DNA of 64,000 nt from NCBI GenBank assembly GCA_030704615.1, contig CM060732.1, positions 22,134,001-22,198,000 on the forward strand, given 5' to 3'. The notes under the pieces are model-generated. The model was not told the DNA's origin. It ran no database searches and was given only the letters and a program-made list of their open reading frames with translations. Both the position numbers and the translations under genes were made by a program. This document shows, in pieces, positions 25,614 to 30,828 of this stretch (the first letter of the stretch is position 1; each line of letters opens with the position of its first letter). This DNA comes from Takakia lepidozioides (lineage: Eukaryota > Plantae > Bryophyta).

Positions 25614-26548
25614 GGTAGATGGTATGGGCGTGGAAAAGTTCCCTCCGCTTCCCTCGTTCTGCTCTCTTTCCGCAGAGAGGAATGTCGGGTCCTGGTTGTG
25701 CGGATTGCTTGGCCTTCCTGAACAATCTGTACAAAGTAGAAGGCGCTCGTCGGGGGAATTTATGGAAGATAGTTTGCAGTTAGATTTTCGGGAGAAGCTG
25801 AGGTCGATGTGGAGGAGCTTGCACGGTCCCTTACTTGCGGTTTGAGGCACAGATGTGAGGCATTTGGTGACAATCTTGGTTTGCAGGTAGGTTTTCTGCA
25901 GGAGCTGCACTGCTGGCTTTGTCTGACGTTTTCTGCTTCAATGTCACTTCTTGGCATCTGCGGAGGTTATTTTTTATAGCTAGATTTTTGTCAATTCTCA
26001 GCAAAGCGAGTGACCTTCTACGACCGTGCCTGGTTCCCTATTTTCCGTCCTGCTCGATTGGTGCCCTCTTCTCTCCCCGCCATTGCTGATGTATGCGGGG
26101 TGTTTTTCTTTCCTTTTCCCCCCTCCATGTTGAGTGGTACCTCTTTATTTGGGTTCTGTACGAGAACTCAGGCAACTCGCCTTGGCGTCTTCTATTTCTG
26201 TCACTAGTTTCGTCTTTCGAATCTGGCGAGAGAGTAGGCCTTCGGACGAGAGAGAACTGATCTCCACGTTTGGGCTCAGAAGGAGACAGACGGGGGACAA
26301 AGACAGGGGAATTGTAAAGGTGCAGAGAGTCTGGCAAATTTTCACAGATATTGACATGACAGATGATGGAGACGATGAGCGTATGAGATGCAGATTACTC
26401 GGCATCCGTGGTGGCAGAAAAAATAGAGGGATTGTACGATAAGGAGTACTCAATTTGAAAGTATTATCTACAGGGAGAAGAGATAAAGGGTTTTGTGATC
26501 GCACAAAGGCGGAGCAGGTGTCATAGGGTTTTCGGGGGAGAAACCTCG

Positions 26549-29500
26549 ATGCCTTCGACTTATTGGAGGAACTGTCAGAGGCCAGAAAGACCCCAGGATT
26601 GGGTCCTCCTCTCTCTAGCGATTCTCGCTGTGATTCCCTTCCTATTCGCAAATGCGGTCATTTTCATATATAGGAAGCGGAAGTATTTTCGGGCGGAAGG
26701 TGTGGATCTCATTCTTGGGAGTTCAACTGCGGGCCTTGTATGGATAGCTTCATCGTTCGTTGTAAACCAGCATTTCAAAAGAGAGAGACACAGCCTCCTC
26801 AGCATCTGTTCGCTATGGACATTTTGGCTTCAGATGTCACTCGGTTTCTGCTTATGGCTGTCCTGCCTGGCTGTGAGATTACATCGTTTGTATATTCTTG
26901 GCGCCACTGATGAACCTCCGAGTACTGTGCGGGGATGGATCTTCATCCCTCTCCTGTTGGTCCCCTCATTTGTCTTTTCCCTGGTTGCAACCGTTTACCG
27001 CGTCAGTCACTACGTGGAGTAAGTTCCCACCCCCAGACTCTCTCTCTCTCTCACTTCTCACTAACGCACATACCCGCATATATAAATGGGCAATTCTGGA
27101 TCCTCTTCCTGCTTGTGTGGGAGCTCCGTACTACTCAAAGGCAAGAGTTTCCCCCATTGTTTGACAATGTGACAATCACTCCTATTTGTAACTCCCACAC
27201 AGTTGTGGGGCTTGTCAGACAATTATCACTGATTAGTCTTGATAAAATCCTAATATGACTTCAGAAGATACCTCATGCACAATTCTTTCGTCAAAACGGT
27301 TTCGGTGACGACCTTCAATCTGTGGTCATCAGTGGGGGAATAGTGACCTGTTCACCACACAACAGTCTTGAAGGAAAAATTGATCAATCTGTGCTATCTG
27401 ATCAAAGGGTCAATCTGGAAACTTAGATACAGTTCTGTTGGAATAGTGGCTAAAACAGGCTCATAAGGAGACAATCAATAAGAGAATCAACATGAGGAAT
27501 AAACATGAAGCTTCTTGCATAGAATGATGAGCAGAAAGATCTTGACATGATAGACTTAACAGCTTATGCTCCTGCAGAAGCACTGAGGTGCATTCAACTA
27601 ACCAGCCCTCTAAGGCAGCGGTGGAATCGTTAGTGGTTCCAAGGGAAGACTCCTTTCAGGGGTCAACAGCTTCCGGGATACAGCCTCTCCCTACCAGGGC
27701 CTTTCTCTCTCTCCCTCATTCCGCCCAAACTGGGTGTGGGGTCTATGGCCGGCAAAGGTCTTATGAGTACAGTCTCTCTCTCTACTTCCCCCTCCCTTGC
27801 ATATCATAGCATATTTGCAGGGAATGGCCAATGAGCTCTCTCTCTCTACAGAACCTGAACATTGTAAATTTTAGTTCTTTCATTACCCAACCATTTTTGT
27901 GTCGACTTCTTGTCTTCTTGCTGTGCTTTCTGTATGTATATATGTGCAATTTTGCACATGCCAAGCCAGATTCCTGTGAGGGTAGGATCATCTGCGTTTT
28001 CCTGAGATGCTGTCTTGTATGTGCAGGAAAGACGATATCTTCAAGTGTGAAGTGCACAAGAAGAATTGGAAAGTTGCGTGTTACCTGCTCATACCACCCC
28101 TGTACTTCTCTGCTATCCTCATCCTAGGTCTCCGTTTGCGAGGGCAACGGGATCTGTTGCTGGGCAATGAGTACCGTCACACAAGCGAGTATGCATCTAT
28201 GGCATTTGTCATCTATCTGTTGACTGGAGCTATTTACTGGTCGGCAAGGGAGGACAATGTCTATGGACGCTGCTTTCTAACATTTTGTGTGTGTAGTCTC
28301 GTCTTTTTCCACTTTTGGGTCCGCATGGGGTGGCCTGTGTATCTATGCCTTTTTAAGCCCAAATCGCAAATGGATAGATATGAAGAGTGCTTACGGAGGA
28401 AGGGGGCAAATTGTTTGGATAAATTACAAAAAATTGCTTCATTACGTAGTCATGGCTCTCCTGGTCCAGCAACATCATATCACTTTTCCGTAGAAGATGG
28501 ATTTCAAGGCATCAGCGAGGCAATTTCAACTGCAGAAGCTGACATAGCACATTACAAGGTGAAGGTCTTTTTAATGTCTTGGTCTGTCTTTGAAGGTGTC
28601 TAGAATATGAAAGTGAGATTCAGCATGTATGTGGAGTGCATGCAAGGTGTTCATTTGCTGCAATATGTAAGAGAGATTCCAGTTGGTTTTCTTTCTCTTG
28701 GTGTTTATTAGCAGCATAGCGTCATGCAGGTATAATCACTTGCAGCTTGATGTTCTGGTAGATCACATACAGGACTTTCGGGTCCTCCCTGCAACCGGGA
28801 TTATCTGCCCACATCAGGCGATTCTTCTCCATGTAAATAACCCAAACAGGGCCAGGGCTTTAGGCTCAGCCTCGAGATCTTCAAAGTTAGCGAACAGAGG
28901 TGCAGAAACAATGTTCTTGATGTTCCTGAAGAGGTTCCCTCTCTGGTGAGAATACCCGGGACATGGTGTCAGAAAATAGATATTGTCTTCAGGCTGCCCG
29001 CACATCGGGCAATTACAGTCTCCTTTTTACTCTCTGCATCTGTTTTGTTCAAAGGTAGCCTGCTCCCTGACCCGAGGGTAGGTAGCCCCTTCAGATCATC
29101 CTTCAGGTCTTCGTTCATAGAGAGAGAAATAAAGAGAGAAATTTATCATGTCCACAAGAGGGCCGAATGGGCCAATAGAACAACAAAGAGAAAGAGAGAG
29201 TGAGAGAGGGAGGGAGATATTTGGCTGACATCCTCTGTTTTGTTATTTTGGGGGGAGCACAGACGCAGGTACAGCATTTGGAGCAGCAGAAAGAAAGCAT
29301 TACAGGCAGGATTAAACATCTGAAGGACCAGCTTCTCTGCCCCTCCCATTCCTCTCCAAACAGGCTTTCAAACACCGTAAGTTTTTCTCTTTTGAAAAAG
29401 CACTTACTTCCTTTATAGGGAGATGGTTCACAGTGGTTTTTTAGAGTTGTAACTAGCCTCTAACATCACTAAACAGCATTGGGCGACCATTAGAGCTGCA

Positions 29501-29891
29501 GTCAAGGATGCTACTCAGAGTTGTCTACTCTGTGAACACATGACTGGTCTAATAGTTGTCCAACATGAGGTCCATGAAGTCAACTATTGCACATTCCTCG
29601 ACTTGGCACCTCTGAGAGGAACATAGGAGCAACTTGGGTTGAATGACGAGTACCCCATTGGCAGCATTATGTTGAAAATAATGTGCAATGGCTCATGTGG
29701 TGCTCATCACATTTAGTTTCTCGAGTGGATTTGTCCAATCAAGTAACAGAAGGTTGATGCTCAAATACGGTATTGAATTTTGTTGAGGGCACATGCGCAT
29801 ACCTTCTTGTTCTGGTGTGCAGGGTGAAGAAATGGGTGTTGAAATGCACAGATCTACCAATCAGTTCATAGCAGAGATCAAGTGCTCATGA
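26549..29891 (+). CDS. Seven-transmembrane protein homologous to the 7TM region of plant RGS1, lacking the RGS box, with a coiled-coil C-tail (~394 aa)
   Basis: Exons 26549-27018, 28027-28558, 29263-29376, 29823-29891 total 1185 nt, GT-AG, in phase. Seven hydrophobic segments; colinear matches to remembered AtRGS1 motifs. The last two exons are less certain. Confidence 0.8.
28720..29110 (-). mobile_element. Truncated LINE 3'-end remnant in intron 2 of the 7TM gene
   Basis: Minus-strand DCNCPMCGQPEDNIYFLTPCP...ALFGL resembles the C-terminal Cys-rich finger of LINE ORF2; boundaries approximate. Confidence 0.4.
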
Positions 29892-30484
29892 GACCAGTCT
29901 GCGGTTGTAAAGCCTGAACAGATTACTTTGGGCCGCAACACAAGAAAGGTTGCCACCCACATTTTAGTTAAGTAGAGACATCAGTTGAATAGTTAGAAAT
30001 GCCAGTGAAAATCTTCCACAAGGATACGTGCAAGCCCATCATGAAGCCAGGGCCTTGTAATTTAGGAGGTGCGTCATGAACATTCATCATATTTGCTTAT
30101 AATTCATGACGAGCACTTTTTTGCAGTAACCAAGTGTACCTTGTGGGTCACAATCCCAAGAGGGTTGCGTTTTCTTTCTTATGGTACTGTCATTCATTCA
30201 TTATGGCTATCCCTTAATGCAACCTTCCTTAGTACAACATAATCAGTAGCATCACTGATCTTATTTGGTTGTCAAAACCATTGTCATATTGGAAAATTTG
30301 TCTTTTGACTTTTACATCATGCCCAGCTTGCAAAAACACTTGAGAGGGTGTCTCTCTTCAGGTTCAGGTTTTTTCCTTTTCTGGCCCAACATGCTCATCT
30401 TTTTTAGCTTCAATTCTCTCCAGATCTGTGTTCTAGGCAATGTTCAAAGAGGAAGGATAACCTGCCTAGTGATGAAGGCTCTCG

Positions 30485-30828
30485 TTTTCTCCCAATCTTG
30501 CTTTCTTTCGTGCTTAAGATCCTTTTCTCCCAATCTTGGTTTCTTTCATGCTTCAGGTCCTGTTCTCCCAATCTTGGTTGCTTTCATGCTTAAGATCCTT
30601 TTCTCCCAATCTTGGTTTCTTTCATGCTTCAGATCCTTTTCTCCCAATCTTGGTTTCTTTCATGCTTCAGATCCTTTTCTCCCAATCTTGGTTTCTTTCA
30701 TGCTTCAGATCCTTTTCTCCAATCTTGGTTTCTTTCATGCTTAAGATCCTTTTCTCCCAGTCTTGGTTTCTTTCATGCTTCAGATCCTTTTCTCCCAATC
30801 TTGGTTTCTTTTATGCTTCAGATCCTTT
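30485..30828. repeat. Minisatellite, 9 copies of a 38-bp unit
   Basis: Unit TTTTCTCCCAATCTTGGTTTCTTTCATGCTTCAGATCC; core motif at 30489, 30527, 30565, 30603, 30641, 30679, 30717, 30754, 30792 (one unit is 37 bp). Confidence 0.97.

Follow-up and report, generated by a model that had tools for sequence, protein, structure and literature searches.

Most class C receptors bind their ligand through a Venus-flytrap (VFT) or cysteine-rich ectodomain. The human orphan class C receptor GPR156, which is related to the GABA-B receptors, has no such ectodomain and couples to Gi/o as a constitutive homodimer. The GABA-B1 and GABA-B2 subunits carry a coiled coil after the seven-transmembrane (7TM) bundle. 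In plants, AtRGS1 joins a 7TM bundle to an RGS box, and its 7TM model was reported to be most like that of the class C receptor mGlu1 (Lou et al. 2024, PMC11580166), a likeness restated in a preprint of 2025. The ESM Atlas also holds VFT-less family-3 GPCR-like proteins of ~300-500 aa from zoopagomycete fungi, which have automatic cluster names and are functionally uncharacterised.

Whether true G-protein-coupled receptors (GPCRs) occur in plants is the subject of a long-running dispute. A 2026 preprint seeded with Arabidopsis sequences recognized GCR1 as the only genuine GPCR of embryophytes. Plant G-alpha self-activates (Urano 2012), and the need for a receptor of GEF type is therefore not obvious. 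RGS1 is present in Selaginella and in conifers (Urano 2012), and no RGS homologue was found in liverworts or mosses (Urano 2012; Urano 2013).

The gene described here lies on the + strand of a 64,000-nucleotide stretch of Takakia lepidozioides DNA, which we call the window. We consider the best explanation, with a probability of about 0.6, to be that it encodes a class C-type receptor (7tm_3, GABA-B/GPR156-like) that is nearly ectodomain-less, carries helix 8 and a coiled-coil tail of ~40 residues, and belongs to subfamily A of a family that predates the land-plant radiation. The ectodomain is absent from both GPR156 and the plant family. However, the two are just 9% identical, GPR156 comes from animals and has a described coupling, any coupling of the plant protein is putative, and the plant tail, unlike that of GPR156, is a defined coiled coil. 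Identity with GABA-B1 and GABA-B2 is 10-13%; the coiled coil after the bundle is common to these subunits and the plant family, but the plant family lacks the VFT domain. A GABA-B-like heterodimer of subfamilies A and B is weakly supported by structure prediction. AtRGS1 resembles the family in its reported class C-like bundle (PMC11580166), but the family has no RGS box and RGS1 was recovered by no sequence search. Lycophytes and gymnosperms have family members as well as RGS1, and liverworts, in which no RGS homologue was detected (Urano 2012), have them too. The zoopagomycete proteins are similar in size and provide the best fold and language-model matches, but they belong to another kingdom and are likened to the family by fold and language model.

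The Takakia gene, its transcripts and its protein

The four coding exons total 1185 nt, equivalent to 394 codons plus a TGA stop. The gene features are as follows.

26300..26548, + strand: transcribed 5' leader (transcript contigs, which extend upstream of 26300)
26356 (ATG) to 26442 (stop), + strand: upstream open reading frame of 28 codons in the 5' leader
26549..27018, + strand: coding exon 1, with the ~15-aa N-terminus and TM1-TM4 (contigs, hydropathy, Pfam)
27019..28026, + strand: intron 1, GT..AG, 1008 nt (contigs)
28027..28558, + strand: coding exon 2, with the ECL2 hairpin, TM5-TM7, helix 8, a further helix and the start of the coiled coil (contigs, hydropathy, orthologue model)
28559..29262, + strand: intron 2, GT..AG, 704 nt (contigs)
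29263..29376, + strand: coding exon 3, with the rest of the coiled coil, then a Ser/Pro-rich stretch (contigs, hydropathy)
29377..29822, + strand: intron 3, GT..AG, 446 nt (contigs)
29823..29891, + strand: coding exon 4, with the final 22 codons followed by the TGA stop at 29889-29891 (contigs)
29892..30160, + strand: 3' UTR (contig ends at 30053 in run X2 and 30160 in run X1)

The splice joints 27018>28027, 28558>29263 and 29376>29823 were all found in Logan contigs from two runs of two studies, X1 and X2. The second joint is tabulated as 28556>29261, which is the same joint; here it is cut 2 places further right. One X2 contig of 1797 nt reaches from a point upstream of 26300, past the stop codon, to 30053. 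The two runs are public and are not recorded as RNA, but contigs from which the introns are missing can have arisen only from spliced transcripts. The gene is expressed and spliced. A pseudogene or annotation artefact is ruled out by the spliced transcripts together with the conservation described below. Two X1 contigs lie within intron 3 (29348-29686 and 29662-29818), and this intron is likely to be partly retained in that run. Intron 1 contains a repeat-like piece at about 27679-27875, and intron 2 contains repeat-derived sequence at about 28664-29057.

A downstream exon encoding an RGS domain was considered and ruled out. The transcript ends at 30053-30160, no X1 or X2 contig covers 30240-31618, and no joint leads there. 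No RGS domain (PF00615) was identified by Pfam in any of the four exons or in the family members scanned (0/25). When the RGS domain of P0019, a fusion protein described below, was compared with the whole 64 kb by tblastn, the best match had E = 1.1 over 13 residues.

By hydropathy, exon 1 encodes four hydrophobic helices and exon 2 encodes three. Each corresponds to one of the seven helices that AlphaFold predicts for the Sphagnum orthologue. The protein features are as follows.

26591-26668, + strand: TM1 (hydropathy)
26681-26764, + strand: TM2 (hydropathy)
26807-26905, + strand: TM3, which opens with a conserved Cys (hydropathy)
26924-26995, + strand: TM4 (hydropathy)
28028-28054, + strand: ECL2 hairpin with a conserved Cys
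28061-28135, + strand: TM5
28154-28240, + strand: TM6
28259-28354, + strand: TM7
28361-28399, + strand: helix 8, short and amphipathic
28409-28453, + strand: further helix after helix 8
28505-28558 (exon 2) and 29266-29331 (exon 3), + strand: coiled coil

Only about 15 residues precede TM1, and they form neither a VFT nor a cysteine-rich ectodomain. The exon 1/2 junction sits in the TM4-TM5 loop. The Cys at the top of TM3 (26807-26809) and the Cys of ECL2 in the TM4-TM5 loop (28046-28048) are invariant in family alignments of 24 and 25 sequences, and they make up the TM3-ECL2 cysteine pair of class C receptors, a candidate disulfide. In the tail, hydrophobic residues recur at a regular spacing of 3-4 from ~28505 to 29331 and stay in register across the exon 2/3 junction. 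The tail of the orthologue model is one long helix (residues 335-375).

What the first-pass annotation observed of this gene and its protein is confirmed by these results. It had described an intact 4-exon gene of ~394 aa, and all three GT..AG joints were reproduced exactly by the contigs of two studies. Its seven hydrophobic segments agree with both the hydropathy count (4 + 3) and the orthologue model, the two cysteines it had pointed out are invariant across 24-25 family members, and the coiled coil it had placed after TM7 is seen as a heptad pattern in the sequence and as the long helix of the model. It had also found no RGS box in the exons, introns or downstream sequence. On this point Pfam, the tblastn search of the whole window and the transcript end agree, and the transcripts join no RGS exon beyond the stop codon.

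Class C signature of the helix bundle

The gathering score of Pfam 7tm_3 (PF00003, profile length 251) is 33.5 bits. The Takakia gene was searched exon by exon, and the Sphagnum orthologue, P0029, was used for the full-length model and the fold searches. Exon 1 alone matched 7tm_3 with 26.3 bits (E 7.1e-6, profile positions 6-136), which is under the 33.5-bit cut-off, and exon 2 alone gave no 7tm_3 match. P0008 scored just over the cut-off (33.9 bits). Four subfamily-B proteins, P0043, P0045, P0048 and P0050, scored 36.8-43.9 bits over positions 6-248 of 251. Most subfamily-A members fall under the cut-off. 7tm_3 matched 3/25 family members, the best with E 3.3e-14, and it is the only curated family reached by any member.

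An AlphaFold2 model of P0029 was built from a 24-sequence family alignment (pLDDT 82.3, pTM 0.72). It shows seven TM helices and helix 8, with a hairpin in ECL2 and a long helix at the C-terminus. In fold comparisons of this predicted model the seven helices take the class C arrangement. Foldseek ranked class A and class C receptors mixed, with E values of about 1e-4 to 1e-3, and re-ranking of these matches with VIA-align favoured class C. The best ESM Atlas fold match, with a TM score of 0.65 over 306 residues, was a cluster of VFT-less zoopagomycete family-3 GPCR-like proteins. Of the 30 named clusters that lay closest by language model, 26 were 7tm_3, mostly from zoopagomycete fungi, with best scores of 0.93-0.94. 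Neither exon 1 nor the family profile matched a PDB sequence at E <= 10; the PDB class C structures were reached by fold comparison only.

By profile matches and predicted structure, the family belongs to the class C 7TM superfamily as a divergent branch in plants, and we are highly confident that the Takakia protein is a genuine member of a class C-type 7TM family. The evidence for the fold comes from the predicted model of the orthologue rather than from the Takakia protein itself. The class C signature of the family is the clearest among the plant 7TM proteins tested in this analysis.

An ancient family and its relation to RGS1

An exhaustive phmmer search of 1.84 billion representatives with exon 2 generated 22 matches. 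Profile searches and cluster look-ups then resolved two subfamilies, A, which contains the Takakia gene, and B.

Subfamily A: Sphagnum, Marchantia (Mp6g08470), Riccia, Diphasiastrum, Selaginella, Psilotum, Adiantum, Ceratopteris, Ginkgo and Cryptomeria
Subfamily B: Marchantia (Mp1g05640), Riccia, Diphasiastrum, Ceratopteris, Adiantum, Picea and Taxus

All members that carry a species name are from land plants without flowers, namely mosses, liverworts, lycophytes, ferns and gymnosperms. No flowering-plant or Physcomitrium protein was among the family matches, and both are heavily represented in the sources searched. The absence from flowering plants raised the idea of a distribution linked to the sperm flagellum, which is excluded since the conifers Picea, Taxus and Cryptomeria have the family.

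The nearest relative of the Takakia gene is P0029 of Sphagnum balticum, with 62% identity on both large exons. Scores against the family HMM were 223.6 bits for exon 1 and 212.2 bits for exon 2. In a maximum-likelihood tree clades A and B have 100% support each and the Takakia gene groups with Sphagnum (97% support), a placement that points to a moss or a near relative of mosses as its source. Each clade follows the plant phylogeny, which argues that the A/B duplication predates the radiation of land plants. Both subfamilies are kept at low copy number in liverworts, lycophytes, ferns and gymnosperms, and Marchantia has one named gene in each.

Named members are entered in databases as 'hypothetical' or 'uncharacterized'; the only other labels are automatic ones in UniProt, for a 'GPCR family 2 profile 2' domain or a 'family 3 profile' domain. 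In the literature we found no paper in which the genes of Marchantia or Ginkgo are named or a family of class C type is described for land plants. Some of the proteins are already labelled automatically in databases and are thus not unseen, but as a family they are unstudied. The first-pass proposal of a distinct, possibly undescribed 7TM family therefore stands: A and B form a conserved family that has a coiled-coil tail and no RGS domain, and no describing paper was found.

The conservation pattern bears on whether these proteins are receptors at all. The conserved columns are the helix cores, the cytosolic ends of TM3 and TM6, and TM7/helix 8. At these sites class C receptors change state and contact their partners. 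A 7TM-fold membrane protein with no receptor role, serving as a scaffold or in trafficking or lipid handling, or persisting as a dispensable relic that flowering plants have lost, would fit the missing ectodomain, the lack of a known ligand and the lack of flowering-plant and Physcomitrium proteins among the matches. It would also fit the finding that plants regulate G proteins mainly without GEF-type receptors (Urano 2012; Urano 2013). We consider such a protein very unlikely, because conservation is strong across the ancient A/B split, because it falls on the columns just named, and because both subfamilies were retained at low copy number from liverworts to gymnosperms.

The exon 2 phmmer search also identified P0019, a protein of 747 aa encoded by a 2.3-kb Logan contig. 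It has a 7TM bundle of the family type with a Pfam RGS domain immediately behind helix 8 (residues 256-372, E 6.3e-16), and it also carries leucine-rich repeats (LRRs). Against a family HMM built without P0019, its 7TM region scored 173.5 bits from helix 1 to helix 8 (E 7e-46 for a library size of 1.8 billion). In the maximum-likelihood tree P0019 has a long branch that arises basally in clade B. When residues 1-380 were used as the query, only P0019 itself was returned. Judged by its sequence, P0019 is not plant RGS1, as it has LRRs, a long branch and no further matches. One bundle thus occurs with two different cytosolic outputs, with the RGS domain and LRRs in P0019 and with no RGS domain in the family.

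P0019 is one reason to ask whether the bundle is the RGS1 sensor module itself. The 7TM region would then be the closest kin of the plant RGS1 7TM region, with the coiled coil replacing the GAP domain, and it would sense cues of the RGS1 type (sugar or UDP-glucose-type) and report them differently. P0019 does join a family-type bundle to an RGS domain directly after helix 8, but its LRRs are absent from plant RGS1 and its long branch lies at the base of subfamily B. A plant 'RGS1-like' cluster appeared among the 30 nearest named clusters of the language-model search, at rank 30, but its score of 0.79 (158 shared features) is only a lead by the tool's calibration. The RGS1 motif pairs proposed in the first-pass annotation (TM3, the start of TM6 and TM7) fall on the most conserved columns of the family. 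The class C-like model of the AtRGS1 7TM region (PMC11580166) points the same way and makes a shared origin of class C type plausible. On the other side, plant RGS1 was absent from the 22 exon 2 phmmer matches (E <= 0.001, 1.84 billion representatives) and from profile searches with A + B + P0019 and with B + P0019, in which the word filter may hide distant kin. Pfam 7tm_3, as noted, is the sole curated family that any member reaches. The family also coexists with RGS1 in Selaginella and conifers and lives without it elsewhere, which argues for a separate lineage rather than a replacement for RGS1 or a truncated form of it.

We therefore regard a direct RGS1 sensor module as rather unlikely, and a deeper common origin of the family and the RGS1 7TM region, suggested by the models, as plausible. 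The first-pass reading of an RGS1 sensor module with a different output survives in part. A 7TM bundle with alternative outputs does exist, as the P0019 fusion demonstrates, but the nearest definable kin of the family is class C and not RGS1.

Possible mode of action and significance

As a class C-type receptor, the Takakia protein would sit in the membrane with its N-terminus outside, an orientation suggested by the first loop, which is rich in Arg and Lys and hence probably cytosolic. It may dimerise through the coiled coil, either with itself or as an A/B heterodimer like that of GABA-B1/B2; we put a coiled-coil dimer at even odds. The bundle might sense a small ligand or a membrane cue, or it might be constitutively active like GPR156. 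Its state would be passed to a cytosolic partner, most plausibly a heterotrimeric G protein (G-alpha or XLG with G-beta-gamma). Action through G proteins is a tentative proposal, which we hold to be possible but on balance doubtful. Flowering plants have kept G-alpha, yet no flowering-plant protein was among the family matches, which counts against a role in G-protein signalling.

A broader scenario can be drawn in which A and B together form a GABA-B-like heterodimeric class C receptor that acts as an upstream regulator of G proteins in non-flowering land plants. It would be the missing G-alpha regulator of the RGS-less liverworts and mosses and would represent the ancestral 7TM proteins that supplied 7TM-RGS proteins with their sensor half, before becoming redundant and being lost in flowering plants. 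We felt that this scenario as a whole is decidedly unlikely.

Flowering plants appear to be without the family, so it is invisible to surveys seeded with Arabidopsis. The family is a testable candidate receptor in plants that are said to have none. With one named gene per subfamily, Marchantia permits a direct genetic test, and on the strength of sequence comparison the family is a genetically tractable candidate for the G-protein regulator of RGS-less bryophytes. P0019 indicates that the same bundle can bear an RGS output, and so bears on the origin of 7TM-RGS proteins. The two subfamilies are ancient and have been maintained at low copy number from liverworts to conifers.

The pairing of A with B was examined by predicting a complex between the Marchantia A tail and B tail. 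The score was 0.53, against 0.00 for the best control, and is rated as weak support; the same outcome is expected for hetero- or homodimers, and such models tend to pair any amphipathic helices. The 0.53 mark was reached by 51/78 solved complexes and by 2/108 mismatched pairs, and scores of 0.60 or less were given by only 5/78 solved complexes and by all 4 passing mismatches. The runs for the tail pair shared at least 58% of contacts, with a partner pLDDT of at least 62.

Transcribed leader and upstream ORF

The 7TM gene is transcribed with a 5' leader that contains a short upstream ORF. In the contig from X1, one of the two public runs carrying the spliced transcript, this leader continues for more than 500 nt further upstream of position 26300. 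The ORF lies within the transcribed leader as follows.

26356-26442: upstream ORF of 28 codons, ATG at 26356 and stop codon at 26440-26442

The upstream ORF may have a role in controlling translation of the 7TM gene.

Three positions differ between the X1 sequence and the window, 29332 (in exon 3), 29453 and 29969. The first is a C to T change, by which a Leu codon of the coiled coil would become a Phe codon. This change may reflect an allele or strain difference.

Tandem array and repeat-like stretches within and beyond the gene

Two stretches inside introns and one array 3' of the gene have a repetitive character.

27679-27875: repeat-like stretch in intron 1
28664-29057: repeat-like stretch in intron 2
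30485-30828: 38-bp unit repeated 9.1 times in tandem, 94% match

Both intron stretches are covered by numerous additional contigs at a far higher depth, and the loose ends of these contigs run into unrelated sequence. Such coverage is characteristic of introns that carry dispersed repeats or pieces of transposons. The tandem array begins a few hundred bases past the 3' end of the 7TM gene, and no transcript contig among the Logan contigs of the two runs extends over it.

Family members with apparently unusual architectures

Three of the related proteins found in searches for the 7TM family depart from a single uninterrupted domain. P0024 from Selaginella (640 aa) carries the 7TM region in tandem, one copy being partial and the other full. 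P0008 (659 aa) has an unrelated insert of approximately 270 residues within the TM4-TM5 loop. These architectures are probably gene-model or assembly artefacts, as is that of P0010 (1327 aa), in which an exhaustive phmmer search with exon 2 as the query identified nine matches to the TM7/helix-8 piece.
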